A stretch of DNA of 33,785 nt from NCBI GenBank assembly GCA_002269645.1, contig NIVC01003364.1, positions 1 through 33,785 on the forward strand, in the 5' to 3' direction. Shown piece after piece: positions 1-29,516 of this stretch (its first letter is position 1; the number at the start of each line of letters is the position of its first letter). The notes beneath the pieces were generated by a model. It did not search any database and was not told where the DNA came from. It worked only from the letters and a program-made list of their open reading frames with translations. Source of the stretch: Macrostomum lignano (taxonomy: Eukaryota). The position numbers and the translations under genes are program-made.

Positions 1-368
1 CTGGCTGTTCCCCTTTTACAAATAAAACAAATAAAAGCGATGCACTTCTGCTTCGTCTGGTCTAACGCTTCTTGCAGACCACTAAAATATCATATACTCC
101 AGGAAAGAAGTATAGAAGTATAGTTTTACTACTTGGATTCACAGATATTCAGAACCGATTTGGGTTCTGTAATTGGCAATTTGAAAAGCCTATATAAACT
201 TTGAAAATGGGCAACGAATGAGAAAAGACTGAGAAATTCTCCGGCTCCAACTGACCGTCTATCACATCACTTTGCCGTCTATTGAGTGTACTGAATCTAA
301 CGCATTGCAGCCTTCTTTGACGCTAGTAAAAAGTACTTAATACGAGTATGTTCTCTACAAAATTTCAG

Positions 369-1849
369 GTCGAACTGGTGTTGCCTTGATTTTCACAGAG
401 TATTTATTCGATGCTGTCAGAAACTACCAAACGTTTCTTGAGTACGCAAGCTTTAAAGTACACGTGGACCGCACACGTGGTGACATGAAATCGTTAAGAA
501 AAGCGTTCGATCGTGAGAAAGACCATTTTCAAAAAGACCTCGTAGTTATTGTTGTCGTGCGCCAACGTCATAGCGATGGGGATCTGTGGCGAATAATCCG
601 CGATATTGGTATCGCGAGATCGACAGAAGCTCGCCACAGCATACTGCTTATCTATTGCGAGGTCTATGACACCGAAGAATCTTCTCAGAGGGAGTTACAG
701 GTAGCCCGGCAAGTAGAAAACTTGCCTGACAAGTTCAGCATGGCCTGTTTCTTTGGCAATGAAGAGGAAGTCAAAGAATTTCTTGACTCATTGCTCCAAG
801 ATGCGAGGATGTCAGAAAGCCTGAATGGAATTTCCGTTGTTGGCAGAAATTTTCAAGACGGGCGCACCTCTCAAAGAGAGAACTTCGTGTTCAAGCGTAA
901 TGATGAAATCCCAAAATGGGCAACGGGAAGAGTGATTAAATGGCTAGGCAACTATACTATCAAATCAAGTGTTCAACGATCTACTACTGCGCAGGACGAC
1001 ACCGTTCAGTCAGAAGTTGTAGTTGATGAGTTCCGACTGTCCGAAACGCGGAAGAGATGGCACCCAAAGCTCCCCCCAGCAATCGAATCCACTTCAGAAT
1101 GTGTCAGAGCACCCAGAGCACTCATCGTGCACAATGTTATCTTCAAAGAGAAACTAAGCGCTAGGCTCGGTAGCCAGCATGACTGTCAAAGGCTGACAGA
1201 GAGTCTCCTAAGACTCGGCTACAAGGTCTCGATCAGGTCGAATCTCAACGGAGCTGAAATTAAACACGAAGTTAAGAAGTTTTCCGAAGAGTCTGACGAC
1301 GGCAGGTCATCTGTCGTTGCGTTTATGTCTCACGGACGCCTCGGCGAAGTCTTCGGCTCTGATGAAGAGCCTGTAGGAGAAAAAGATGTATTACAACTTT
1401 TCTCAGATGAATCAGGGACAAAAGACAACTTTCAGCTAGCCATATTTCAGTGCTGTCGTGTTCCAGGTCAATTACCAGACGAGGTGTCGTGTCTGGCCTT
1501 CTACCCGGGTATGATAATCGCTCACTCTACCCTGCCAAATGACTTCAGTCTGCGTGTGAAGAGCAAGGGCAGCCGGTTCATCCAGAGCTTCTGCACAGTG
1601 CTGGATCTTTTTCCTCACAATGACATTGTAACGATCATTCCTCTGGTGAATTACTTAATGCTCAACTCGATTTATCAAGGATTCAGTCAGCAGCCTTGGT
1701 GGTTTGTTCAAAGCGGAAAAAGGTTCTGGCCCAAAGTTCAAGGTGCTGGTGAAAATTCACAAAATCCGTCAGAATGCAACAATGCTTTTGACTTACAGGA
1801 GTTACAAAATAATTATCGAATCAGATCACCAGGATTAGCCTGCAGTTGA
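369..1849 (+). CDS. Caspase-family (peptidase C14) protein 1, 5'-partial: uncharacterised N-terminal alpha/beta domain plus C-terminal caspase domain with intact His/Cys dyad
   Basis: The 487-aa ORF has caspase motifs in order: PRALIVHN (nt ~1112), RLGSQHD, FMSHG (His 1331-1333), AIFQCCR (Cys 1454-1456), MIIAHST, SLR..KGSRFIQSFC. The ORF track start (TTG 386) is not a true start. An acceptor tttcag ends at 368 and the exon opens in phase 1 (xGT-R-T-G-V-A-L-I-F), matching the phase-1 intron position in gene 2. The first exon was not located with confidence. Confidence 0.88.
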
Positions 1850-2217
1850 GGATCGTGGAGCAGCCCCTGTTCCAGGTCATTGATACCCTGTGTGGATCAT
1901 CGGGCAGAGCATGATGATCTTAATGCGGTTGATTCACTAACTTCTAATGGGATTCGTCTGACTGATGACGCTCCTGATGCTCCATATAATTCTAAAAGTT
2001 GTGCTGGAGTGGACAGCCCTATCCAACTGCGTTGAGTATAATTAATTATTAAACGTTGATTAATGCGCAAAAGTAAGAGTAAATTTATTTATACTATAAT
2101 ATAGCACGTTTTTTAATAATTCTCACCCATTGTTAATTGTTGTAATCCAATTATAGGTAAATGTAATACAAATCAGAAATTCTCCATAAAGTACACTGGC
2201 AGATCTAATGAGGGATC

Positions 2218-2719
2218 GAAGCTACTCCGTACGTTGCTTGGTCCACTACACCCCAAGCACAGCAGCACCTGGTACATTAAATAGACTATTTTATTTCAAA
2301 TATTCCCATTCCTACGGACATATTTCTTGCTATGGCTTGCCCCTCTCGGTTGTTCTGCGAACGCGTCCGCGCAAAGTCTAGCTAGATCTCTTTTTGTCTG
2401 TGCTTTTGTCTGCGTCGCGCTATATATATATATGGCTGAGACTCAGACACCGGGTCCTTGGTCGGTTTAGGGGCAGACATAGAAACCGTCCAGCCAAACC
2501 TGTCTAGCTAGAGCACATAAAATTGAAATTGAAATAAAAAATGATTGCAATTGAATAGCCGCGTGTAAGCCGAAGACACAAAAGGGACAAAATGTGTTTA
2601 TTGAATCCTTGTTTTTATTCGCACACTATCTTTTACTCGCTCAACGATTTGCTTCTAACCTCTTTACACATTATCGTTTAGTTCGTGTGGTTGATTAAAA
2701 AACCTGTACATATTTTATT
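2218..2719. repeat. Dispersed repeat, copy 1 (probable non-autonomous transposon fragment, unclassified)
   Basis: Near-identical to 9950-10348 in the same orientation, from gaagctactccgtacgttgcttgg to ctgtacatattttatt. Copy 1 has 100 extra bp (2338-2437). No TSD or TIR recognised. Confidence 0.85.
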
Positions 2720-3507
2720 ATTTATACCGGAAATTTTCAACACATTTTTCTTGAACTAATTTTTAATTTGTATTTAAATCCTTTATACCAAATTTAAGCT
2801 CAGATCGCGTCATAAACTTAGCTAAAAACAATTGTTTAAAATAATTTTCACATTCTTGCTATTTGAGAATTAATCTGACGTCAACTACTTGAAGTAATAA
2901 CGTACGTTCCGCAACTATTGCGATGACTTTTTAATAGAAAGTTTTTACTGCTCAATGTATGAAGCTTAACGTATTTAGTTAATAATTATTAGTACTATTT
3001 TTTTCAGCCAACTATCATTAACAATCCTCGGCTAGCTCTTGATTATGAGTAATTTACAGTTAATTATTTGTGAAGTTCCACTGTCCTGCTGTTTCTGTCG
3101 CTTAACAGTTTTTTTCTAACAATACAGCAAAAAATGCTTCATCATTCACCTCAAACCGTTTCAATTGACTTTCATTTTCTACGAGCAGAAACGTGTTAAA
3201 TAGAAACTAAATTTAGATAGAGATTTAGGTATATTGATTTAGCTGTTTCAAAATGCTAAGACAGTTCGAAGTCAAAAGATAAATCGAGAGCACACAAATC
3301 AACAGTTTTCTAAAATAAAAATCACTCGTAAAATCACTTTATGCACTGTCAGGTAGTTCAGGCAAGTGTTTTGTACTCGTACTGCAAACAGCTAAATTTC
3401 ATAACAATTTGCTACCGAATTTATGCCCCTTTTCAGCGAGAATTTTTCAAAGGCAACTTGAGAGATTTAAAACAAATAAAAACATCCGTTGATTTCTATC
3501 AGAAAAC

Positions 3508-6025
3508 ATGACGAAAGACGCTTCAACTTTTATTGGTAAGGGGTTCGCTTTCTTCATAAATTTTCTATAGCTGACGAAAGATCTATAAAATACGTATACT
3601 TGAATAAACGTTTAAGCCGAAACTTTTAGAACGATCGTATGGCAACCGCCCAAAACGAGACAATTTTTTTAATTTTTACCCTTTCAGATCATCGCCGACT
3701 GCTGCTGGTCTTCGCTGATGAACACAAAGACATGCTGATAAATTATACCGAGTTTATGGAGAGTAAATGCGGATTTTTTAGGAAGACATTTCCCCTCGCA
3801 AACATTTCTGCGGCTTTGCTGAACTCGACAGCGGTCCAGTCATTCAAGTTGTCTGCGCCGTCGTCTGCTCGGAGACATCCGCATGCAACATGGAAGACTT
3901 CCTGAAGCCTCTTATTGCTCGGTTTGGGAAAGATGTCGATCAGCTGCTGCTGTACTGCAGAGTCTGTGATGGCAACCCAAATGAGAAGGATGAAGAATTA
4001 AAAAGTAAATTCAACGCCAGTGGATTCGAATACAAAAATTCGACAATTTCTTACATTGCTGACAGTTCTGACAATATTAGAAAGTTCCTAAGTGACAGCC
4101 TAATCAAACAGAAGACCAAGCAATGGAATGCCGAAACTTGTGCAGCTGATGTTCTTTACAACATTGAGGGTTTTGAAAAATTGTGCGTACAAAAGACAAA
4201 GAATTTTTTGCGACACATCTCGGAACCACATACGTCTGGGCAATCTGGCGCCATTTCATTCGCTGAGCCGTTTACCAATCATATCAACACACAGATCCCG
4301 ACAATTCGTTGATTTATCCTAATAGTCGTGAAACTTTTCCGAAGGCTCTTATCATTTTAAACATCTACCCAGAAAATAATATCAGCAAAGCAATGCTCAC
4401 GGACTGGAAGCGTCTGCTGTGGCTGTTCGACAAACTGCAGTTCAAAGTCACAGATGTGCAAACCGACGCCAGTACTGAGAACGCAGCAGAAACCAGTGTG
4501 AAGAATTTTGCAAACTCTGAATACCATGGAGATTCGTGCGTCTTAGTGATTCTGTCTGAGCGCAAGCTCAGCCAAAACTTTATTCGCAATACCAGCGATT
4601 CTATGGCAGCTGGCGAACAACTCCAGGACAAGCCCAGACTGATCATCCTGCAGCACTGGGAGACCGAACCGCCAAGTGCCGATGGCGCGCCCGCTGGACT
4701 TTCCCAGTTCGTGCCGGCTATTGTTGACTCAATCCGGACCCGCCGCAAACACACAAAGCCTGAAGTGCGAGTTCATCCGCATGGCGGAATGATTTGGTGC
4801 CAGCCGGCTGCTGCAGACTCCGACACTGATGACGGCAGCTCACTAGTTTGGGTGATCTGCGACACCTTCATCAAATATTCAGCCACTGAGGACGTGGTGT
4901 CAATGATTTCGCTGATCAATGAGAAGCTGAAGGCCTCGCCTCCACTGTGGTGTGTGCAGACTACCAAGTATTTCTTCATCACAGACACCAGTCGTCCATT
5001 GAATAACTCACGTGAGTACCTTTTTTGAGCTTATTCAAATTATACTTCGTATTTTATATTCCATAACTTATCTTTCGACTGTGAAATCGTTTTGTCGAAT
5101 TGTGCAGTTGCTCTGTGATTCGGAATTACGTGCATTATTACTAACCAGAACAGGTAGAAAAGAGCAAATGTATTCGTAATTACGTTAAATCAGCCAGCAC
5201 AAAAAGGTAGCACAATAAGCTAATGAGGGTCAGTCGATGGAAAATCTTAAACACTATTTCAGTCTAAAAGCTGCCTCATTCCATCGATAAAATGTCTCTT
5301 AAAAAACCTTTTTCAGTCGAGCCACCTTCCACTAAAGAAAGCGCAAAAGCGGGTCTCGCCTTAATAATAATTACACATTTAAGAACGACTGTACAAATTT
5401 GTAAGAGAAGGAAGCGACATCGATCGTGAAAAATTGAAAAGTACTTTCAAAAAGTTTGGTTACGACACTAAAATTGCGGAGGATCTCAGTGCAGAGAAAG
5501 TTCAATCTGAAGTGAAACAATTTGCCGATGATAGCCGTCACGGTGACACCTGCATTGTGGTCATCATGTCCCACGGAAAACTGGGAAAAATCATTGGAGT
5601 CGATCACTCGGAAGCGTCGGAAACGAAAATCTAAAATACTGAACGATAGCAAAAGCCTTTCAGGAAAGAAAAAACTCGTCATATTTCAGCTATGCCGAGA
5701 TCACCCAGATGGAAGCCCATCGAGCAATTCTGACCATCCCACTCGACTGGTCTACCCGGACATGATCGTGGCGCACTCGACAAGCATAGGTGAAAAAAGC
5801 TTTCGCAGAACAGATCAAGGCAGCCGGTTTGTGAATAGCCTGTGCGATGCTCTTGACAAGTTCGGGAAAGGCTCAGACATCGTCTCGCTCATCAGTGCCA
5901 TCAACTACATTATGATGAGAAGTTTTTACGATAAAACTAGTACAATTAAAGATGACACCCAGCTGCCCTTCTGGCTGGTGCAGACCACGGGCCCTTTTGT
6001 TCTCGCCAATCTTACGGATGGCTGA
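3508..6025 (+). pseudogene. Caspase-family gene 2, frameshifted as assembled (pseudogene or consensus errors): N-terminal alpha/beta domain + inactive caspase domain + catalytically complete caspase domain
   Basis: Exon 1 is 3508-3535 (MTKDASTFI, donor gtaag). Exon 2 is 3688-5011 (acceptor tttcag, donor gtgagt). Exon 3 is 5317-6025 (acceptor tttcag, phase-compatible). The N-terminus aligns to gene 1 (LVFADEHKDMLINYTEFME vs LIFTEYLFDAVRNYQTFLE; QLLLYCRV vs ILLIYCEV). Domain 2 (4309-5011) has PKALIILN, but ILSERK and ILQHWE stand in place of SHG and QACRG. Domain 3 has GLALI, REGSDID, IMSHG (His 5572-5574), IFQLCR (Cys 5693-5695), MIVAHST and GSRFVNSLC. Frame changes are needed at about 3782-3840, 4267-4310, 5365, 5402 and 5630. 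Confidence 0.75.
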
Positions 6026-6439
6026 GAAGTCGCTCGCACTGGTTCCGATAAGGGCTTTGGCATCCGAATAAGGGCAAAATGCATGACAGACACTCGCAGT
6101 GTTAATTTTTTTATTTATATCACTAATTCAATTTTAGCTTCTAAAACATTGTTTTTAAACAATCATAAGCCCTACCGTCAGTAGAATTTTTTTGACATTT
6201 TGCGTTTTTCAGTCGGTGCTTGCGCGATATTTATTGGTTTATAGACGCACAATTTTCTGATTGTTGCAAATTATAGTGCCTCTACTTTTACCATGGCCAA
6301 ATGTGCCAATGGATTGATTCTGTTCTACGCGGCCACCCACATTGAAATAAAAAAATTAAGAAATAAAAAATACCAGGGAGCGGGCACCCTAGCTGCAGTC
6401 ACTGCAAATGTACAAACTTAGATTGCTTCCTTCATCATC

Positions 6440-6640
6440 ACAATCACAATATACTAAATCTTCATCACAATATACTAAATCTCTAAGGTTTGTTTGTTTT
6501 ACCGGTATCACAATATACTAAATTTCTAAGGTTTGTCTGTCTTATACTTTAAATCTCTAAGGTATGTCTGTCTGACCGGTATTCTAGTCTACAGCCTGAA
6601 TGCCTGAACCGTTTTTTTAACATGCTTTATTCAATTGCAA
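6440..6640 (+). mobile_element. Helitron/Helentron-associated (DINE-1/HINE-like) short element fragment with repeated 5' end
   Basis: The motif cacaatatactaaatctctaaggt(t/a)tgt(t/c)tgt recurs 3-4 times. It is followed by tgtctgtctg and gcctgaaccgttttttt, which resembles the microsatellite-plus-core layout of DINE-1-like elements. Class recalled from pattern only. Confidence 0.4.
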
Positions 6641-6984
6641 ATTCTTGTGAGATTTTGTGGATTTAATTGTGAGGCAGAATCCTTATAAACTATGTATATT
6701 ACTTATAACAGTAGTTAAACCCGAGTTTTAATCACAGCCAATCAGAAATTTTCTTCCCCATTTGTTTAAATTCCCCAAACAAATCAAATTCTTTTGTTAT
6801 AATTTTAGTAATTGTTAAAATGCGTCCCACCTTCCCCAAATTTTCTGTATATATGGAATCAGGTTGACGCTAGAAAAATATAACCTCGGCGATCGTCCTC
6901 AATAATTGCCTTTAACTATTCTTGCGAGAATCTTTTAGCGAAACAAATCTAAATTTGGCTAAGACTTATCTCGTTATTTCTTTC

Positions 6985-7110
6985 ATAAGATAGGGAAACC
7001 AGAGGTCGTGGAGACCCAAAACCAGGACTCTAGATAGGGAAAACCAGAGGTCGTGGAGACCCAGAACTTGGGATCTGGTTAGGAAACTTGAGGTCGTGGA
7101 GACCCAAGAA
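6985..7110. repeat. Short local repeat, 3 copies of gaggtcgtggagaccca
   Basis: The 17-mer GAGGTCGTGGAGACCCA occurs three times with variable spacing; the first two are preceded by gatagggaaa(a)cca. Confidence 0.7.
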
Positions 7111-7902
7111 TAGAAACCTGAGTAGGGAGATCGAGATCGTACAGATCCTAAGAAAGCCGTACAGGCCAATAATAGGCATTAGGCATTAAGAGATTAGGTA
7201 TTAGGGAAGTAGATTAGTTACCGCTGGACACCCTTGATCCCTGGAAAACGCTAGACTTTCGGACTGAACTAGTAGGGAATTAGACAGTGTCTTACCGCTC
7301 GGGCACTACACTCTATCGCAAGGTTTCTAGGAAATCGTGTGAAATTAGAAATCTCTAGGAAAGAGTCATAGATTAGGGCTGCCAACGCTACTCAAAGTAG
7401 ATATATTAGTGACAATTTATAGGATAGAGAAATTAGAACTAAAGGACTGCAGCAAATTGGTGAGATAATTTCAGTAGGAACCAGAAGGGCTAGCACAATT
7501 GCATTGAAAAATTCGAATGGGAAAGTGGTTAAATATTCGAAAAACGAGTTTTCCCAATGCTTTCAATCGGAGGCTAGAAAAGGTCAAAATCTCGACTAAC
7601 TGAATAGCAATTCCAATTAAGATTGCGCCACAACTTTTCTCTTTTCACTGTGTAGGCCTCAATACAGGCTGCCGTGTGCAGCGGAGAGGAAAATACACAG
7701 TGGCTGCGTGTGTACATTCTGACCCTGGCTCTGACTCCATAGAAAATTGCTATTTATAGATCTCACTCAACTGTGCATTGGCTCTGCCTGCATACAACCT
7801 GTGCACACTGAGCAAGCCTATCACTGCTATGAACATGTATTTGACTGCAGTGCCGAAGCATATATGGCAGATTTTTGTGCTCTCCGATCAGTAGGTGGAA
7901 TA

Positions 7903-7973
7903 GCCGAGGTGTAGGCACTAGGATTAGGTTTAGTCTCGGCATAAGGTCCAAGGTTCGAGTCTGCCTCCTCGGC
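7903..7973 (+). other. tRNA-like segment (pseudo-tRNA or SINE head)
   Basis: 71 nt bounded by a perfect 7-bp stem GCCGAGG/CCTCGGC, with a B-box-like GGTTCGAGTC at the T-loop position. D, anticodon and T stems do not pair well, so it is not a functional tRNA. Confidence 0.35.
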
Positions 7974-8470
7974 GGATGATTAAAATCAAATAAATTTATT
8001 CATATATAGCTTGGACCTCAACTAATTGGAATATTTTTTGTTGAATTAGCAAAGCAAAGCCAGCTACAGTGAGAGGCCTGCAAGTTAATGCATTGAAATT
8101 AAAAACCAAGCCAATGCCCAGGACTAATTGAATAGCGACACCCGCCCCTCAATTTCAATATCAAAAATGTGTTGCGCAACCTTTCAACGCTTGTAGCTCT
8201 CCACGCGAGTGTAGAGAACCAATGCTATAGTTGGCACTGAGTTATGATGCAATACAATTGCATCGACAGTCAGAATGCTTCTCAATCAAAAAGAAACTGT
8301 TTGAACTTTAAAAAACGGGGCAAAAAATCGAGTTTTTCGAATATTTAATCCCGAAAAAATTAAGCATTCCTTTGCAAAAATTTGTGTACCAGCGCTCCAT
8401 AAATACGCATCGAATGCAGAAAACCCCACAAAATTCTGACTACGCAGAGTCAAGTTAAACGAAGGTTCCT

Positions 8471-8471
<1 letters not shown>

Positions 8472-8502
<31 letters not shown>

Positions 8503-8556
8503 GTAGGTAGGTAAGTAGGTAGGTAGGTAGGTAGGTAGGTAGGTAGTTAGGTAGAT
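8472..8556. repeat. Compound microsatellite (TAGA)n-(TAGG)n
   Basis: Read directly: a TAGA run switches to a TAGG run at about 8500. Confidence 0.95.
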
Positions 8557-8929: not shown

Positions 8930-9760
8930 CAGTTTGGCACCACTCCCACCCTGATAAGCACACCACTCCCACCTTGATTAGCACCACTCCCATCTGATTA
9001 GCACTCTCCTCACAGATTAGCACTGCTCCCACCGGGATTAATATCCACTCCCTCAGATTACCCCCACTCCATACATTAGCACCAATCCTCCAGATTAACA
9101 CTACTCCCCATATTAGCCCCAATTCTCCTATATTTGTCCCACTGTTAGATTAGCCCCACTTCTTCAGATTTGCACTACTTCCATAAGATTAGCACCAGAT
9201 TATCACCACTCCTCCAGATTAGCCTCCCTCCCCAGATTAGCACTGCTCCCCAGATTAGGACCGCTCCCCAGATTAGCACCGCTCCCCAGATTAGCACCGC
9301 TCCTCAGATTAGCACCGCTCACCAGATTAGCACCGCTCCCCAGATTAGCACCGCTCCTCAGATTAGCACCGCTCACCAGATTAGCACCGCTCCTCAGATT
9401 AGCACCGCTCCTAAGATCAGCACCGCTCCCCAGATCAACACCGCTCCCCAGATTAGCACCGCTCACCAGATTTAGCACCGCTTCCAGATTAGCACCGCTC
9501 ACCAGATTAGCACCGCTCCTAAGATCAGCACCGCTCCCCAGATTAGCACCGCTCCCCAGATTAGCACCGCTCACCAGATTAGCACCGCTCCTAAGATCAA
9601 CACCGCTCCCCAGATTAGCACCGCTCACCAGATTAGCACCGCTCACCAGATTAGCACCGCTCACCAGATTAGCACCGCTCACCAGATCAGCACTATTTCC
9701 CCCCAGATTAGCACCATACATTAGCACCACTAGCCCAGATTAGTCCCACTCTTCCAGATT
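8930..9760. repeat. 18-bp minisatellite, unit CAGATTAGCACCGCTC(C/A/T)C, with degenerate flanks
   Basis: About 25 well-conserved units in the core (~9229-9700). It accounts for the QISTAP-repeat and SGANLx-repeat ORFs in the track. Confidence 0.95.
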
Positions 9761-9949: not shown

Positions 9950-10348
9950 GAAGCTACTCCGTACGTTGCTTGGTCTCTCCACCCCAAGCACAGCAGCCTG
10001 GTACATTGAATAGACTATTTTATTTCAAATATTCCCATTCCTACGGCCATATTTTTTGCCATGGCTGAGACTCAGACACCGGGTCCTTGGTCGGTTTAGG
10101 GGCAGGCATAGAAACCGTCCAGCCAAACCGTCTAGCTAGAGCACATAAAATTGAAATTGAAATAAAAAATGATTGCAATTGAATAGCCGCGTGTAAGCCG
10201 AAAACACAAAAGGGACAAAATGTGTTTATTGAATCCTTGTTTTTTATTCGCACAATATCTTTCACAACGCTCGACGATTTGCTTCTACTTCTTTACACAT
10301 TTATCGTTTAGTTCGTGTGGTTGATAAAAATACTGTACATATTTTATT
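9950..10348. repeat. Dispersed repeat, copy 2 (paralogue of 2218-2719)
   Basis: Direct-orientation match to copy 1, lacking the 100-bp segment between the two ATGGCT motifs. Confidence 0.85.
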
Positions 10349-11015: not shown

Positions 11016-12234
<1,219 letters not shown>

Positions 12235-13982: not shown

Positions 13983-16900
13983 TCAATGCTCGTTTAAATC
14001 GCCCAGTAGCTGGCCAACATCCTCTCGGACGCCATCCTTGATGTCCTTGGCGGCGTCGAGACCCCGACGAACCGCGGCCGAGGCCGACTCTCTGAGATCG
14101 TCGCCGCTGTCGTCTTCTCCGCCGGATGAGGAGCCGAAAAATCGAATCAGAAGGCGGTTCACCTGATCCGGGGCGTCCTGCTGCACCCAGTGGCTGGCCT
14201 GGGGCACCAGCTGGAACTCCATCTGACTGCAGTACTTGCCTGCATGTTATGGGAGTGGCGATTGATCGAAGCTATTCAAAAAGATACCAACTTGGGAAGC
14301 GCACTAGTTGGGAACCCGGCGATTTAGAAACCTACTATTTAGAAACCCTACTAAAAAATTTAGGAAATCTACCATTTAGAAACCATGAGACATGACTTAT
14401 ATGTTACTCGTAGGCACCCTACTATTAGGTAGGAACCCTACCATACTATTTAAGAACCACAAAGTTTAGGAACCCTATCATTCAGGAACCATACAATTTA
14501 GGAACCCTACAATTTAGGAACCCTACAATTTAGGAACCCTACAATTTAGGAACCCTACCATTCAGGAACCCTACCATTCAGGAACCCTACCATTCAGGAA
14601 CCCTACCATTCAGGAACCCTACCATTCAGGAACCCTACCATTCAGGAACCCTACCATTCAGGAACCCTACCATTCAGGAACCCTACCATTCAGGAACCCT
14701 ACCATTCAGGAACCCTACCATTCAGGAACCCTACCATTCAGGAACCCTACCATTCAGGAACCCTATCATTCAGGAACCCTACCATTCAGGAACCCTACCA
14801 TTCAGGAACCCTACCATTCAGGAACAATACAAGATTGGAAACTAGAAAAACCGTAACAGAGTTAAAGGACATACGGGCACTGCAATAAGCAACTGTCTTT
14901 ATTCGAAACTCACTAGACAATTTAGCCACTTCCTGCGTGATGTACTTATCGTTGGCGCCAAACACCAGCATGGTTGGCACTGTAAGCTGCTTCCTGCTGC
15001 CGCCTTCGGCGCCCCGGCTAGGATAGCGGAACGCGGCCCGGTAAAAGTTAATGGGTCCAGTTAGAGCCGTAGCCGACGAGAAGGTGTACTTGAAAGCGTC
15101 CAATTCCTGCTGGTTAACAACGCCTTTCAAAGCGATGTCCATCGAGACGAGATCTTGACGAGTAATGAGCCATTCCGGAAAGCAAGGCAGCTGGAAGAAG
15201 AACATGTACCAAGACTTGAGGAACTGGGTCAGATTCGAGCGAATGTAGGTCTGGAATGCCACGGGATGTGGGCAGTTGAGTACGGCCAGTTTGGTGACCA
15301 TGCCCGGGTGAGCCATGGCGAACGACCAGACAACTGCACCGCCCCAGTCGTGACCAGCCAAGTAGCACTTGTCGTAGCCTGGTGTTGGTGAAATAATTTT
15401 TTTTCTTACCTGGTATCTAGTTTACGATTACTCAATCATAACTCTTATAATTACTGCATTGCTGCCCATTCCGCCGACTCCCCTAAGCAGGCACACAAGC
15501 GCGCGGATACGTAAGCAGTCAAACGCACAGGAGTGTACAGCGGCCCCGACTTTATTTTTTGGGAAGGCCTGTACACTTCACTGCGCCTTGGGGGTTGGCC
15601 CTCAAGGATGTCAACTGCACGAGCAGAGCAAATCCGAGATTCCAATTTAGCCCCAAAATTAATGCAACTACACTTGGAATCGAGCCTGGGCCGCTGGTCC
15701 ATATGTGCGCCAGGATAAACCACTAGTCCTCTCCCAAATCATCACAACTATGATTGTAAAACTCAACAGCCTACCAGTAAATCACAGCCTTTGTTCAAAG
15801 TGAAATATTAAGCTACAGGAAACGCAAATCTTACCCAAAGCGTTAATAGCCTGTCGGATATCTTCAACCAGTTTTTCAATTCGATAATTCACAACGCCGC
15901 GCGGCTTGTCGCTGTCGCCGTAGCCGCGCATGTCTATGGCCACAATCCTGTGGGCGAGGCGAGAATTGACAAGATCAAGATCTGGACACTACCATTTCGC
16001 TAACCCCTGAGCAAACACACGCTCACACAGGGTGTGCGCTTCTTAGTACTCTTAGTAAACTACTGTTAGTAGCTCGTAATGTGCTGCATGTGCAGGTTTA
16101 TTTTAATTGATTTAAAATTTCACTAACCTGTAGTTCTCAGCCAGATCGCTGTCAAGCTGATGGCGCCAGCTGAACCAGAACTCTGGGAAGCCGTGCACCA
16201 GCAGTAGGAGGGGTTTCCGGGGATCGCCATTCTCAATGCAGTGCAGCGTGATGTCCTGTTAAGTAAAGTTAAACAGATACATGCAAGTGGAGCAGGTTAA
16301 GACGTTAAAACATTACAACAAAGCAGTTTCATTAGTCATTATGGGGACGCCATTTTCATTTTGAGTGGGTTCCAGCAAATAAGTGTCAAGTAGCGCCAAG
16401 GGCCAAGGCGATACTGTAAGGTGGCGCCAAGGCTATGCTGTAAGGTGGCGCCAAGGCTATACTGTAAGGTGGCGCCAAGGCTATGCTGTAAGGTGGCGCC
16501 AAGGCTATGTTGTAAGGTGGCAACAAGGCTATACTGTAAGGTGGCGCCAAGGCTATGTTGCAAGGTGGCACCAAGGCTATACTGTAAGGTGGCGCCAAGG
16601 CTATGTTGTAAGGTGGCGCCAAGGCTATACTGTAAGGTGGCGCCAAGGCTATGTTGTAAGGTGGCGCCAAGGCTATACTGTAAGGTGGCGCCAAGGCTAT
16701 GTTGTAAGGTGGCGCCAAGGCTATACTGTAAGGTGGCGCCAAGGCTATACTGTAAGGTGGCGCCAAGGCTATGTTGTAAGGTGGCGCCAAGGCTATACTG
16801 TAAGGTGGCGCCAAGGCTATGTTGTAAGGTGGCGCCAAGGCTATACTGTAAGGTGGCGCCAAGGCTATGTTGTAAGGTGGCGCCAAGGCTATACTGTAAG

Positions 16901-19900
16901 GTGGCGCCAAGGCTATACTGTAAGGTGGCGCCAAGGCTATACTGTAAGGTGGCGCCAAGGCTATACTGTAAGGTGGCGGTGGCGCCAAGGCTATGTTGTA
17001 AGGTGGCGCCAAGGCTATACTGTAAGGTAGCGCCAAGGCTATGTTGTAAGGTGGCGCCAATGCTATGTTGTAAGGTGGCGCCAAGGCTATACTGTAAGGT
17101 GGCGCCAAGGCTATGTTGTAAGGTGGCGCCAATGCTATGTTGTAAGGTGGCGCCAAGGCTATACTGTAAGGTGGCGCCAAGGCTATACTGTAAGGTGGCG
17201 CCAAGGCTATACTGTAAGGTGGCGCCAAGGCTATGCTGTAAGGTGGCGCCAAGGCTATACTGTAAGGTGGCGCCAAGGCTATACTATAAGGTGGCGCTAA
17301 ATACTTTCGCTAGCCGATTTTGCGGGTGAAGATTCAAAGTCGCTTTTTTTCAAAAAGCTCGATGTTCACGAGCAGAATGCATGACTGCACTTGGAGGTAG
17401 GGATTCCAAAATCCCGACATTTTACAATCCCGGGATTGAATAGTCCCGAAATCCCGATGCTGTTGAAATCCCGGGATTCAAAATCCCGGAATCCCGGTGC
17501 TTTTGCAATCCCGGGATTAAAAATCCCGGGATTCGATTCCCAAAAAAATCCCGGGATTCAAATCCCGGATTTTTGGCCCCAATCCCGGGATCCCGGGATC
17601 CCGGGATTGAAATCCCTAAATTGCTAGACGGACTGTGCGGCGTGCCGCGTGCAGTAGTCATGGTCTCGCGACTCTCAGAGTCTCAGGGCCTTTTCATATT
17701 ACCAATTCCAGAACCAGAATCGGTTCGGAATTCGAAGAAAAACAGCAGTATAACTATTAAACTCTGTTAATATTTAACTGCCTTAACAGCCTCACTTAGC
17801 ACAATTTTTCACTTTCTTCTTGGCGACTGTCATTCAATAATAAAAACTTTATAGCACGTATCTCCCTCTAGTTATGGAGACAAAAAGTTTATACTTCACA
17901 AATTGGTTCTTGTTCTGGAACCAGAGCAAGCAATATGAAAAGGCCCTCAGTCTCGTCTCGTGGTAGAAAACGAAAAAAAGTTAAAATTATCTATAATTTA
18001 CAGTTCACATTAACAATTTTTAGCTCAATTAGGACAGGAGCTTTGCAAATGTTTAACGTTTCATTGAGAAACAGCAAAAACAAATAAATGTTTTATTATT
18101 CAAATAAACGTTTAGACTTTAAATTATCTAATTTAGGCATTGAAAGGTCGTTCTAATCCCGGACCAATCCCGGGATTAAGGCCTTGAAATCCCGGGATCC
18201 CGATCCCGGTCTTTTGCAATCCCGGGATTAAAAATCCCGGGATTCGATTCCCAAAAAAATCCCGGGATTCAAATCCCGGATTTTTGGCCCCAATCCCGGG
18301 ATCCCGGGATCCCGGGATCCCGGGATTGGAATCCCTACTTGGAGGGGCTTGTGTTGTGCTGCGTGATAGAATTGCATCCACGAGTGTCCACTTTTGACTT
18401 CTATCATATTATCTTAACTAACCAATCGACTGAAACAGTCTAGTCAAAGTCCGACTGTAATAAAACTTCACTTAGTAAACAAACTTTGAACGCGACGCTC
18501 AAGTGACGCCCATGTCTCAGTGTGCAGTGTTTAGTTAATCAAAAATACAAGTCCCAGCTGATAAGGCGGGGTCAGCTTTTAATCAGTCAACAGTGGCACT
18601 TGTTTTGCGAGTGAATCAAGTCAAACCCAGTCAGCCCAGGCACGCAGCAAAGCAGTGCTAAACTACAAAGTTCAAACAATCCAATTCCAGACAGATAACA
18701 GATAAGGCGCCTGGCCGCTAGTCTGGACACGAAGACAAGACAAAACAAGTCACTATAATGTCACACACGCTTGGGTCTCATAGTGGGGTCAAAGCTTCAA
18801 GGTCTAGTTTTGGAATGGACTTATTGAAAATACCAGTACAGTCCAGCCCAATGGAATTGGTTGGCAAAAATTTCCTACAATGTATCAAAGCATTCAAACT
18901 GTTGAAATAAAAAAGATCTCAACTTTGATCTTAGCTATATGCATGATTTATCAAGTCCATTATTAGTCTGAGAAACTTGGACTTTGATAACCTAGTTAAT
19001 TGTCATACCAGAGATATACTTAGATAAGAAATTGTACAAATAGATTTATATATATATTTCTCAAAAAAGTACATTTACATTGGATCATAATATTATTCAA
19101 GAGGCTTTACTTAATTAATTTAAATGCTATAAAAATGGGTTGTCTATATTTATGTACATATTTATGTATGTAGCTGTGTGATCAATTGGAGAAAAAATGG
19201 CTCAACCAATTTTCTTCAAACTTGCACCATTTAATCAGAAATTTTCCTGTGATGGTACATACATTTAAATGCTAAAAAACATCACTTTTTTGGTATCCTA
19301 ATTGCTTTTTGGTGCCTAAGTTAAAAATAAAACCTTCATTCTAGCATTTGACTGCAATGATCTAATCTATAAACAAAAACATTTATTTTGTTAAGCTAAT
19401 ATGCTTATATTAAATTTTGAAAAGTCTTCAATTTGAAATAAGATATTAGCTATATACAGTATATGGCTATACAGACCCTAGATTCTCAAATCTATTATAC
19501 TATAGTGACTTCCCTACACTTTATTTTCAGTTTTATGCTAGAAAAACTAATTTACTTGCAATATATGCACTAGACTCGGACTAGGAAGGTTTTTCCACAA
19601 TAAAGGACCTTTTTGCAGTATAACAATAAAGGACATTTTTGTGTTGCGATGTAAAGGATCCTTTCTTGTATTATGATATTTCAATCTTTTGAATGCCAAT
19701 AGCTACACCATACGATAGCTCTGTGGGATTGTTCCATATGCTAGATGCTAGATTGTATGCCAACCCTTTTATGTCTATTTTGTTTTCTAGAATTTTCTAG
19801 TGTATATATAAGATTTGCCTGATTTTGAAGTAGGGCAAAGGCCATATAGTAGAAACTTAAAAGATAAAAAATGAAACATTTTTATTAAAATTATGAATGG

Positions 19901-26074: not shown

Positions 26075-29000
26075 ATGGATTACTTAGAGGCGCTTCTGTC
26101 AAAAAAGTTAAAAAACCTATCTAATCTGATCAAGACCGACAGTATTAGCCAAGTGAATCAGGCGCGGTACCAAGGCAACGGCCTTGTTCACGTAGCTGCC
26201 GCCAGCTCCGACCCGGAACTGACGCGGCTTGCCATCCAGGCCGGGCTGGACCTGGAAGTGCGAAACGACGAAGACATGACGGCTGTTCACGTCGCGGTTG
26301 CTAGCGGCAATGCCGAAGCGCTGAAGCTGCTGCTGCAGGCCGCAGCGGACCCGAACGCTGTCTACGGCAGAACCGGCTGGGGTCCCCTGCACCTAGCAGT
26401 TCGATCCGCCTCGACTGCCGCCTCCGTACAACTGGAGATGCTGCGCCTTCTGATGAAGAGCGGCGCCGATGCCAGTCTGACAGATGCGGACGGCAACACG
26501 CCGCTGCACCTGGCGGTGGAGGCCAACGCCGACAAGCGAGTCGTTGCTCAACTAGCTGACGCAATGGAGAATCGAGTCTCATTGAGAAACCTTCGCAGCC
26601 TGACGCCACTGGAATATGCAGCCATGAACGGCAATCGAAAAGCGATTCAGCAGCTGGTGAAGCGAGGCGCAGTGCCGCAGATTCGACTGCTGAACCGGTT
26701 TGGCTATATTGCCTACGTTGAGGTGTTTCTGGAGATCACCATCAACAAGTTGAGCACTGACTCTGTGGCCACTCTGCTCAGGCACCCGGATTTTCAGGCG
26801 CTGATTAACTACATTGTCTCCTACAAGATCAATGAACCCAATCGGCGCGATGCTCAGAGTGGTCAGTCGACAATTCTGAGCGATTTGGTTAATTCTCGGT
26901 ACAACGGTTTGGGCACCTTCAAGAGCCTGCTATTGAACAATATCAATACAAGATTCGCAAATTACCTATCTGACAATGCCAAGGCTAGATCAGCCTGGGC
27001 TGACCTGGTTATAACCTACGTCCTATTCAGAGAATCCGTATCCCTGATAAGGATGCTAATTGAGGACAAGCTTCTGTTCTTTCTAACTGACGCTGCAATC
27101 CAAGGCCAGCTGCACAATCTGTACAAAGGCAAGTTCAATCGCTACCTACCAAGCTCTTTGTCTCAGAGCTTCGTAGCGGACGATGGAGCTAGTAAGCAGC
27201 AGATTGAGCAGATGCTGCGTCGTTGGCTAAAAAGCAAATCCGGTATCTGTTTGATGAAATTCGGTTTCCCTAGCGAGGAAGCAGTCTCTATTGGTACTAG
27301 GCAGGTGTTTCGAGCGCCAGCCTTTAGCTTGATGACCTGGGCGACTGCGTCCGGTCGCTATCACCTGTTGCCCTATCTTTTCATAGCCGAAGACACGGAC
27401 AATATACCTCTCGGACTGTTCAGCATGGCGCTGCTCAATCGTCTTATGCAGGCGCGCAGCTCTGTCGGCACTCTATTCAGCCAGGATGCGGAGTACTATC
27501 GATTAGAGCTCGAAGTTCTCATACACTATCTCATATCCCGGATGTGGCACTTAGACAAGTCGCACGAGAAGTCCAACTCGGCGCTGTTCCAACTGCAACA
27601 GCTGCCCGTGTATGGCGGGGCCAGCATGCTAGACATGACTATGCAAGTTCGATCGTTGAAACTGCTCCAGTTTTCTAGCACTATCAGCGCTATGAGCCTA
27701 CTGTGGTATCGCGGCCTGTCTTGGATGTCAAGCTCTCACCGGTTCCTGTTTATAGCTTCATCATTAGGCCTCTGGTTTGTGCTGCTGATTCCGGTAATTG
27801 TGCCGACGTTGGAACGGCTGATTCCAGCGCGGTCGCCCGGCTTACAGTTCCTTAGAGTCGGCCTCCTGCTGTGTCTAGCGTTCATCAATCTTCTGATCGG
27901 GCTGGGCCTAGCTGGGCGCTACACCCTTCGAAGAATTGAGAAATTTCGACGAAAAGCATCAGCAGCCGAGAAGGAGCAACGACAAAAATTTGGCAGCCTC
28001 CTGCTCACTGGAGCGCCCGGCCAACGATGGCAGTTCGACGTCATGGCCGGGGACGCGCCGACGTCGAGCGCCGACTCCGTGCTGGAGTTTCTACGCACCC
28101 CAGCAGTGAAATACCTGGCCTTCTTGCTCACGTACTTAGCCTATGCGCTATTAGGTTTATGGATTGGCACGCGAAGCTTCCGGTACATCATTTCCGACGC
28201 AGAAATCGTCTATTGGATCTTCTTCTTCGGTTTCCTATTGGAGAACGGGCAGCAGTTTGTCCGCGCAAAATTATTTGGCAGTTGTTTCTATCGGCAGTCA
28301 ATCTTCTGGGCCATAGTGTCGGTGCTTACCTACCTGTTCGGCTTGACAGCGTTCATCTGGCGAATGGTTTACCACACTGCTCACCAATTCGAAAACAGGA
28401 CTGCGACTTCGTTTGAAGCGCGCGAAGTTGCCGACTCAACTTTCCTGGGCGTTCGCTATCTATTCGTGCTGTCCCATTCGCTAATGTTTATGCAACTCTG
28501 GCGATTCTTTTCCTCGAGGCCGTGCATCGGGCTGCTAATCCGCATGATTGAAAAACTGATTAGATACTACTTGTGCCAGTTTGTGCTGCTCATGCTGCTG
28601 GTCATGATTCGAGGAGCGTTTATCTTTGGCAGTATTTTGTATCCGCAGGTTAGTACACTCGCAGCTACCCTTGAAAAAGTTGATTTTCAAGTAGACAGGC
28701 CAGTGAGACGATGCATCGAACAGAATTAATTAGTTTCCTTGTGCACTTAAATGGATTCTTCAGTATACGGTGATGCACTCATTTGCTAGCATGAATTTAA
28801 ACTTGAAGTTTGAAAATTTAAATTGCGTATCAAGCAGGATAAAACTCGTAATTCTTGTGTGCAAATAAATGAAAGCAAAATTTGAAAAAAAAACTTTTCA
28901 GGGCTACGCAATGCACGCCAATAATGGCACGGTCACCCAGATGTCCACTCCGATCTACTTTCTAAGAGTGTTCGTGCACTCGTACTACTCAATAATGGGT

Positions 29001-29516
29001 GAATTCCTGTCAGACTATCTGAGTGGATTCGAATGCCAAGGCGACTCGATCTGTCCGGCAACTTACCTGGGCAGCTTTTTGGTTACAGTATTTCACATGT
29101 CCGGATACGCCTTCTACACCACTCTGCTGCTGCTTGGACTTCTCATCTCCTTGGTTACCATCATTGTTGACGAGCTCAACCGGAATCACATCGCTCACTG
29201 GCAGATTGCTCGGTACAACTTTGTGCAAGAGTTGAACTACTATTCTCTGCTTTATCCACCATTCAATGTGCTGCACATCTTAATTGAATGGATCGCCATG
29301 GCGAACGACTGGAAAGCCGTAGCTCAACTGTACGACCTCGGCCAGGGTTTCTACAGCCAGTCCAGCCTGATCAACAACCTGCTCAGTCAGGCGTATGTTT
29401 TGGAGCGAGATCGAGATCGAATGCTAGCCGAGATCGAGCAACGGCGAGAGCACCGGAACAAAACCAAGATTGATACTGGAAACAGTGGACTGCATCGTTG
29501 GCGTTGCTGCTTCTAG
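26075..29516 (+). CDS. TRP cation channel: 5 N-terminal ankyrin repeats on a TRPM/TRPS-type (MHR4 + 6TM + TRP box + coiled coil) body, ~1062 aa, 2 exons
   Basis: Exon 1 is 26075-28648 (donor gttagt) and exon 2 is 28902-29516 (acceptor ttttcag), joined in phase 0. There are five ankyrin repeats (LVHVAA, TAVHVAV, GPLHLAV, TPLHLAV, TPLEYAA). These are followed by an MHR4-like segment (LMTWATASGR...YGGASMLDM...LLWYRGL), S1 FLRTPAVKYLAFLLTY, pore YYSIMGE with a Cys pair (CQGDSIC), S6 LLLLGLLISLV, TRP box WQIARY, LLYPPF and a charged C-terminal coil. An in-frame acceptor at 26043-26044 means an upstream exon is possible. Confidence 0.9.

Follow-up and report, generated by a model that had tools for sequence, protein, structure and literature searches.

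The window of our study, by which we mean the whole stretch of DNA that was analysed, is the entire contig NIVC01003364.1 (33,785 bp) of the Mlig_3_7 assembly (GCA_002269645.1) of the flatworm Macrostomum lignano, and it shows eukaryotic gene structure. Its forward strand carries at 3508-6025 a caspase gene, in which the original prediction had seen a catalytically dead caspase domain spliced in frame to an active-type one, possibly a single-chain equivalent of the cFLIP/caspase-8 heterodimer. In a homology search, the conceptual translation of these two domains (hereafter d2 and d3) matched over the full query, with 96% identity, the 691-amino-acid M. lignano protein P0001 (BOX15_Mlig018970g1); it also matched P0002, a 325-amino-acid fragment model of the same species. 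P0001 is encoded by the locus L001 (NIVC01000269.1) and P0002 by the locus L002 (NIVC01000988.1), and positions 1-8554 of the window are 98.8-99.4% identical to these loci at the nucleotide level, over ~8.5 kb. Alignment of the three loci gave the following organization, with three caspase-like domains (d1, d2, d3) instead of the two that had been proposed.

3508 to 3535, forward strand: exon 1, an ATG and 9 codons (MTKDASTFI) followed by a GTAAGG donor; it matches the N-terminus of P0001
3536 to 3687, forward strand: intron 1 (GTAAGG ... CCCTTTCAG), in agreement with the exon structure of L001, which reproduces P0001 exactly
3688 to 4299, forward strand: exon 2, part 1, the degenerate caspase-like domain d1 (three-way alignment, HHalign)
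4300 to 5011, forward strand: exon 2, part 2, the pseudo-caspase d2, previously described as the open reading frame (ORF) 4309-5028 (Pfam PF00656)
5012 to 5316, forward strand: intron 2, in phase 1 (GTGAGT ... TTTTTCAG), with the same junction in P0001 (L001) and P0002 (L002)
5317 to 6025, forward strand: exon 3, the active-type caspase d3, split over three frames and ending with the stop TGA at 6023-6025 (Pfam, alignment)
5528 to 6025, forward strand: the annotated coding sequence (CDS) P0009, 165 amino acids, which opens at an ATG outside the d3 frame and then enters the C-terminal half of d3 (public record)

The ~99% identity between the window, L001, and L002 fits the published block structure of this genome, in which three-copy paralogous blocks, 1-2% divergent, make up ~70% of the assembly and correspond to the three subgenomes of a neopolyploid (PMC10733133). 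We consider it fairly probable that a Macrostomum-specific gene has three ~99% identical subgenome copies, the locus at 3508-6025 being one of them, and that P0001, the product of the intact sister copy, is encoded by three exons and made of a degenerate caspase-like d1 (residues ~8-213), a pseudo-caspase d2 (~214-453), and an active-type caspase d3 (~454-691); this degree of confidence applies to the explanation as a whole. The exons of L001 (6001-6028, 6181-7506, and 7813-8534) translate exactly into P0001, and d1 and d2 form a single uninterrupted ORF within its exon 2.

The splice between d2 and d3 had been predicted from a gtgagt donor at 5012 and a tttcag acceptor at 5316, and both hold. 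They are canonical (CAC followed by GTGAGT at 5011/5012, and TTTTTCAG ending at 5316) and are used in P0001 and P0002. TTTCAG acceptors had also brought a nematode to mind as the source of the DNA, a reading dropped because the contig belongs to M. lignano. The join gives c+tc, a leucine, and the reading continues in frame as ..EPPSTKESAKAGLALII.., with an identical junction (..NNS-L-EPPSTKE..) in both sister proteins. In the window, however, the frame that follows the junction is continuous for only ~16 codons. The gene models of this assembly were produced by RNA-seq assembly with StringTie and TACO followed by TransDecoder (PMC5730564). Because the models are RNA-seq guided, the d2-d3 splice is transcript-derived, at least for the family as mapped to L001 and L002.

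The original prediction was accurate on the residues of the two domains. The ORF 4309-5028 (frame 1) matches Pfam Peptidase_C14 (PF00656, E=8e-7), and d2 is 27% identical to d3 (E=2e-15), with a weak match to CED-3 around HGDSxxLVILS. The alignments place ILSERK (4549-4566) at the position of SHG and ILQHWE (4645-4662) at that of QACRG. The catalytic histidine is thus a glutamate, the cysteine a tryptophan, and both arginine positions of the S1 pocket are lost. None of the four paralogous d2 domains keeps these positions: SHG is replaced by SER or SEC and QxC by QHW. Caspase homology together with the loss of the catalytic His and Cys makes d2 a pseudo-caspase.

By contrast with d2, all the expected motifs are present in d3: REGSDID (5404-5424), MSHGK (5566-5580), FQLCRD (5684-5701), and SFRRTDQGSRF (5798-5830). 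The two larger pieces of d3 in the window match Peptidase_C14 with E=1.6e-15 and 3e-13, and the intact P0001 with E=3.4e-44. The intact domain aligns with caspase-7/-3 and CED-3 (E ~2e-22), with the Arg (vREGSD), His (SHG), Cys (QLCRD), and Arg (SFRS) in register. Against caspase-7, the catalytic His and Cys and the S1 pocket residues Arg179, Gln283, and Arg341 are all matched, SFR(R/S)TDQGSRF being among the motifs; the pentapeptide is QLCRD, not QACRG. The best Foldseek matches of the P0001 model are CED-3 and caspase-3/-7 (target TM-score 0.75-0.83). By profile, fold, and residues, d3 classifies as a caspase (MEROPS C14A / Pfam PF00656) and is predicted to be Asp-specific.

Both d2 and d3 carry a family-specific beta6 motif. 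The motif W-x-[VI]-Q-T-x-K-x-F is common to the two domains (PPLWCVQTTKYFF at 4939-4977 and LPFWLVQTTGPF at 5963-5998) and is also found in P0008, P0010, P0015, and P0012, whereas canonical caspases have P-x-x-x-S-x-L-T-K. Since the motif is shared by d2 and d3 and has no counterpart in canonical caspases, d2 seems to have arisen by duplication within this lineage. It also implies that d2 and d3 resemble each other in the strand that makes the caspase dimer interface.

The first domain is much harder to recognize. It has no Pfam match, and its AlphaFold confidence is low (predicted local distance difference test, pLDDT, 50-70). A profile of six d1-type domains nevertheless aligned collinearly with the caspase profile (HHalign probability 61%, E=8e-5), and its PDB matches, which are weak, are mostly to large subunits of caspases, from beta1 to just before the position of SHG. 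We propose with moderate confidence that d1 is a third, strongly eroded caspase-derived domain. UniRef labels the relative P0003 as 'TIR domain-containing protein', a reading of d1 that we dropped: the d1 profile had no TIR match in either the PDB or Pfam. In P0001, P0003, and the paralog upstream of the locus, Peptidase_C14 was the only Pfam family above threshold, with neither CARD nor DED.

The window copy itself departs from this organization. The three-way alignment with L001 and L002 revealed five frameshifting deletions in its CDS, all private to the window.

After 3810, forward strand: loss of 1 nt (A), in d1, giving a TGA at 3903-3905
After 4297, forward strand: loss of 1 nt, between d1 and d2
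Around 5360-5369 (near 5364), forward strand: loss of 4 nt (TAAT), one tandem-repeat unit, in d3
After 5394, forward strand: loss of 4 nt (TGGT), in d3; at this site L002 lacks 6 nt
5631 to 5636, forward strand: loss of 2 nt (CC to C, AAAAA to AAAA), in d3, creating a TAA at 5632-5634

The first two deletions put the ATG and domain 2 in different frames. The idea that domain 3 is read in one frame fails, because exon 3 contains three frame changes and the TAA at 5632-5634: the segment from 5317 to ~5364 is in frame 0, NNYTFKNDCTNL in frame 2, REGSDID..SHG in frame 1 up to that TAA, and QLCRD..SFRR..stop again in frame 2. An uninterrupted reading frame for d3 is thus absent from the window copy and present in L001. 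A spliced mRNA of the window would be read for 81 codons from the ATG at 3508 before the TGA at 3903-3905 (codon 82), and its longest ATG-initiated ORFs are out-of-context fragments. In its assembled form the locus is unable to encode the proposed fusion, and its possible products are limited to an 81-residue N-terminal stub or such fragments. The single chain of pseudo-caspase and caspase stands for the 691-residue P0001, where d2 and d3 are joined through exactly the intron that had been predicted, and falls for the window copy with its five frameshifts. L002 has three 1-nt deletions of its own (window equivalents 4618, 4757, and 5933), which leaves L001 as the only intact copy of the three. 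The substitutions 4590T, 4666G, 5809A, and 5907A are diagnostic of the window copy.

These lesions suggest a gene in decay. As assembled, the window copy has the features of an unprocessed pseudogene: it keeps its introns, carries several disabling frameshifts, and has an intact paralog to which it is ~99% identical. The third copy is also damaged, and the substitutions between copies are near neutral (pN/pS, the ratio of the proportions of non-synonymous and synonymous differences, of 0.5-1.1, from 3-5 synonymous and 7-12 non-synonymous differences). The window copy is thus most likely an unprocessed pseudogene decaying through redundancy after a recent genome triplication, and we lean towards the lesions being real. 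The opposite reading, that the five deletions are uncorrected assembly errors and that the true window copy encodes an intact 691-residue three-domain protein like that of L001, so that the fusion is made here too, is possible but in our view not probable.

Several observations weigh against real decay and for such errors. At 33.8 kb the contig is small, and the PacBio/Canu assembly to which it belongs was polished with short reads (Pilon), in a genome where 93% of the read pairs multi-map (PMC10733133), which hampers polishing and makes residual indel errors plausible; the assembly is known to contain errors (PMC10733133). Of the five lesions, three consist of lost single bases or shortened homopolymers: two homopolymer contractions at 5631-5636, and one base at each of two other sites. 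In L002, at the end of its own contig, 1-nt deletions are numerous and scattered and extend to non-coding DNA, which suggests that local consensus quality is variable. The five deletions add up to 12 nt, placing the first and last CDS segments in the same frame and thus restoring the original frame at the end of the gene, but this is probably a coincidence (chance ~1 in 3). Finally, indels private to the window number 5 in 2.06 kb of CDS and ~5 in 5 kb of flanking non-coding DNA, without a significant excess in the CDS, and with such small numbers the pattern cannot separate decay from error. On the other hand, two of the deletions are 4 nt long, one a slippage in a TAAT repeat and the other at a site that varies among all three copies, and neither is a typical residual error of a long-read consensus. 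The same contig contains an uninterrupted single-exon ORF of 884 codons, showing that it is not uniformly error-ridden, and the near-neutral substitutions are those expected of redundant copies.

Inactive relatives of caspases can act on active ones from a separate polypeptide. In Caenorhabditis elegans, CSP-2 and CSP-3 are inactive caspase homologues that restrain the autoactivation of CED-3, CSP-3 having only the small subunit. A truncated product of the disrupted window copy might similarly act in trans on the intact members of the family. There are two candidates in the spliced mRNA, a 243-residue ORF from the Met at 4393 (d2 without beta1) and P0009 (the C-terminal half of d3); the latter matches exactly the window ORF 5528-6025 and is the sole CDS that the public annotation gives for the caspase locus. 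Yet, both lie far 3' of the first AUG, behind several stops, where translation would be inefficient and the transcript a target for nonsense-mediated decay. The first 35 residues of P0009 are out of frame, and there is no evidence of conservation for either product. We regard a function of this type as very improbable, and keep to decay of a redundant copy as the likelier account of the window locus.

The interest of the locus thus shifts to the family to which it belongs. We gathered its relatives by an exhaustive HMMER search and by cluster look-ups in UniRef. A word-indexed homology search with d1 and d2 alone returned only three M. lignano proteins and was too insensitive. At least six M. 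lignano genes encode one to three dead caspase-like domains followed by a single C-terminal active domain, and the search and look-ups found no protein bearing d1 or d2 outside this species. Besides P0001, the relatives are as follows.

P0008, 1017 amino acids: d1-d2-d1-active
P0010, 838 amino acids in L002, product of the gene just upstream of the 3508-6025 locus: d2-d1-active
P0156, 849 amino acids: d1-d2-d1-active
P0158, 745 amino acids: d2-like, d1-like, active
P0015, 580 amino acids: d1-active
386 to 1849 of the window, forward strand: last exon of the upstream, P0010-like paralog, with a d1-type dead domain and an active-type caspase in one ORF of 487 codons (SHGRLG at 1325-1345, FQCCRV at 1445-1462)

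The 5' exons of this upstream gene lie beyond the start of the contig, and it has a 1-nt insertion at ~1806 relative to both sister loci, which alters its C-terminal tail.

In the five relatives listed by name, His and Cys are kept solely in the C-terminal-most domain, and all d2 domains lack the catalytic and S1 residues. Yet, identity between paralogs is 32-52% in d2 and 34-40% in d3. The dead domain is thus at least as conserved as the live one, which argues that it is kept by selection. One could object that annotation has wrongly fused adjacent single-domain caspase genes into multi-domain proteins. Multi-caspase predictions are found in databases for insects, fish, amphioxus, molluscs, and a jellyfish, all of them unverified automatic models, and the same caveat was made by the authors who described a coral protein of this kind (PMC4715348). 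However, d1 and d2 share the uninterrupted ORF of L001 exon 2, the d1-type and active domains of the upstream paralog share their 487-codon ORF in the window itself, and the d2-d3 junction is a canonical GT-AG phase-1 intron found at two loci with RNA-seq-guided annotation. An independent annotation in UniRef also contains models with two to four domains (P0003, P0156). Merging is therefore an explanation to which we give hardly any credit, and we treat the multi-domain proteins as genuine.

How might such proteins work? AlphaFold models P0001 with a predicted template modelling score (pTM) of 0.66 and with pLDDT above 90 in d3 and of 75-90 in d2. This pTM is close to the fraction of the chain made by d2 and d3, as would be expected if the two were one rigid unit, and it suggests that the model fixes their positions relative to each other. 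In d3 the inter-subunit loop is short, and inspection by eye of the alignment revealed no Asp cleavage site conserved across paralogs, either in this loop or in the linker between d2 and d3. Such a loop, together with the lack of CARD and DED, makes the dead domain, or domains, attractive as a permanent partner of d3. In the mechanism that we propose, d3 would be the only protease of the intact protein, and the dead domain or domains would contact it in cis; for d2 this contact would probably involve the beta6 motif that it shares with d3. The built-in partner would then set the activity of d3 without the dimerization step that adaptors drive through CARD or DED, much as cFLIP-L acts on caspase-8 in trans and as was proposed for the coral protein.

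We hold this cis heterodimer in the intact protein to be possible, and put it forward tentatively. Within the modelling, the d2-d3 interface is deduced from the pTM alone. When d2 and d3 were modelled by themselves, with an alignment from which the d2-bearing paralogs P0008, P0010, and P0011 were left out, d3 was the only confident part (pLDDT of d2 30-58) and the pTM was 0.56, with d3 making up half of the chain; this run is uninformative on packing. Furthermore, in most paralogs it is a d1-type domain, not d2, that directly precedes the active domain, and the dead partner of d3 could thus be d1-type or d2. These points weigh against the cis heterodimer, and some of them also speak for an alternative that we find rather unlikely, in which the dead domains are a long pro-domain or scaffold (for recruitment, localization, or substrate binding) or partners in trans, and d3 dimerizes with another d3 as ordinary caspases do. 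With neither CARD nor DED present, control of the protein has to come from a different N-terminal module. A d1-type domain of ~200 residues separates d2 from the active domain in P0008, P0010, P0156, and P0158, d1 seems to lack the beta6 strand in the AlphaFold model, and several paralogs are encoded by adjacent genes and their products could interact. Such a scaffold fits less well with the full-chain pTM, which suggests that more than one domain has a fixed place, with the beta6 motif common to d2 and d3, and with the increased killing seen upon removal of the dead domain in the coral protein (PMC4715348). For these proteins we tentatively favor a partnership in cis.

The coral protein is caspase-X of Acropora millepora, a single cDNA-verified protein with an inactive caspase domain ahead of an active one (Moya et al. 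2016, PMC4715348). To date it is the sole case in which such an arrangement has been studied. The cFLIP/procaspase-8 structure 3H11 served as template for its model, in which the two domains meet through their beta6 strands; its dead domain dampens the killing of HeLa cells, and deletion of this domain raises it (PMC4715348). Its authors thought it restricted to corals, called other multi-caspase predictions unverified, and mentioned one prediction in A. digitifera with four caspase domains (PMC4715348). The layout of caspase-X, an inactive and then an active CASc domain in a transcript-supported polypeptide, is that of the intact sister copy P0001 and not that of the window copy. In both cases an N-terminal domain without His and Cys precedes the C-terminal active domain in one polypeptide, CARD and DED are lacking, the proteins form a lineage-specific multigene family, and a cis mimic of the cFLIP/procaspase-8 heterodimer through beta6 is proposed.

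The differences are nonetheless substantial. The flatworm family belongs to another phylum, and relatives of its d1 and d2 were found solely in M. lignano. The beta6 motif common to d2 and the d3 of the same protein is specific to the lineage, indicating an independent internal duplication. Flatworm proteins have an additional, far more degenerate d1-type domain, for a total of one to three dead domains. Caspase-X also has functional data, whereas the flatworm proteins are known from sequence and models. The comparison, in which the Acropora side is known by description, suggests that the flatworm family originated independently.

The likeness to cFLIP and caspase-8 that had been proposed is therefore to be taken as an analogy, for which caspase-X is a published precedent (PMC4715348), and not as kinship. 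As in the cFLIP-L/procaspase-8 complex (PDB 3H11), a dead caspase fold without His and Cys lies beside an active-type caspase domain. But cFLIP-L comes from a gene of its own, works in trans, and relies on tandem DEDs for its recruitment, whereas Pfam detected no DED in the flatworm protein, whose N-terminal region is the d1 remnant; for these reasons it is not a relative of cFLIP. Its d2 is a recent local duplicate, as the beta6 motif common to d2 and d3 indicates, and not an orthologue of cFLIP, and d3 is closer to effector caspases and CED-3 than to caspase-8. The nematode CSP-2 and CSP-3, likewise derived from caspases and catalytically inactive, associate directly with an active caspase and thereby regulate it. 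They do so in trans, as polypeptides of their own, whereas in the flatworm the dead and live domains are covalently linked.

The window locus is in itself ordinary, a damaged redundant copy, but the family behind it is an undescribed variant of the principle seen in caspase-X and cFLIP. A 2024 survey of lophotrochozoan caspases mentions for M. lignano only one unusual caspase, with a kinase pro-domain (PMC11463336), and the gene identifiers (Mlig018970 and others) turned up in no paper of the searchable literature. In its most general form our interpretation is that Macrostomum independently evolved single-chain proteases with multiple caspase folds, where one to three dead domains serve as intramolecular partner or scaffold of one C-terminal active caspase and replace dimerization by CARD or DED, with redundant subgenome copies in decay; this would be a second, convergent use of the cFLIP/caspase-8 principle after caspase-X. 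Taken as a whole, this interpretation is doubtful. If true, the existence in a flatworm of a transcript-supported family whose members have two to four caspase-like domains, the last alone being live, would make the fusion of dead and live caspases a recurrent evolutionary solution. Transgenesis exists in M. lignano, which makes the family amenable to genetic study. In a triplicated and error-prone assembly, a gene may appear on one contig as a string of ORF pieces, and sister copies need to be consulted before such a locus is called a functional fusion or a pseudogene.

Elsewhere on the contig lie several repeats and further ORFs. A dispersed repeat of ~290 bp, with copies ~94-95% identical as seen through L001, flanks the caspase gene at ~2430-2700 and 10061-10348. 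There is an (AGTT)n microsatellite of 1.2 kb at 11016-12212, and minisatellites lie at 8976-9716, 14468-14825, and 16402-17297, with units of 18, 16, and 24 bp; the long ORFs at 9203-9730 and 16383-17329 are artefacts of repeat arrays. The 16-bp minisatellite at 14468-14825 falls inside the span of an annotated multi-exon alpha/beta-hydrolase gene on the reverse strand (13983-16025+; 383-residue product, Abhydrolase_1). Further downstream, the forward strand carries the 884-codon ORF (26075-28729), whose N-terminal part contains ankyrin repeats and whose C-terminal half is hydrophobic. By its appearance it could be a TRP-type channel, the ankyrin repeats being the only part of such a protein that was detected, and the ORF of 215 codons that follows on the same strand at 28869-29516 may be its next exon.

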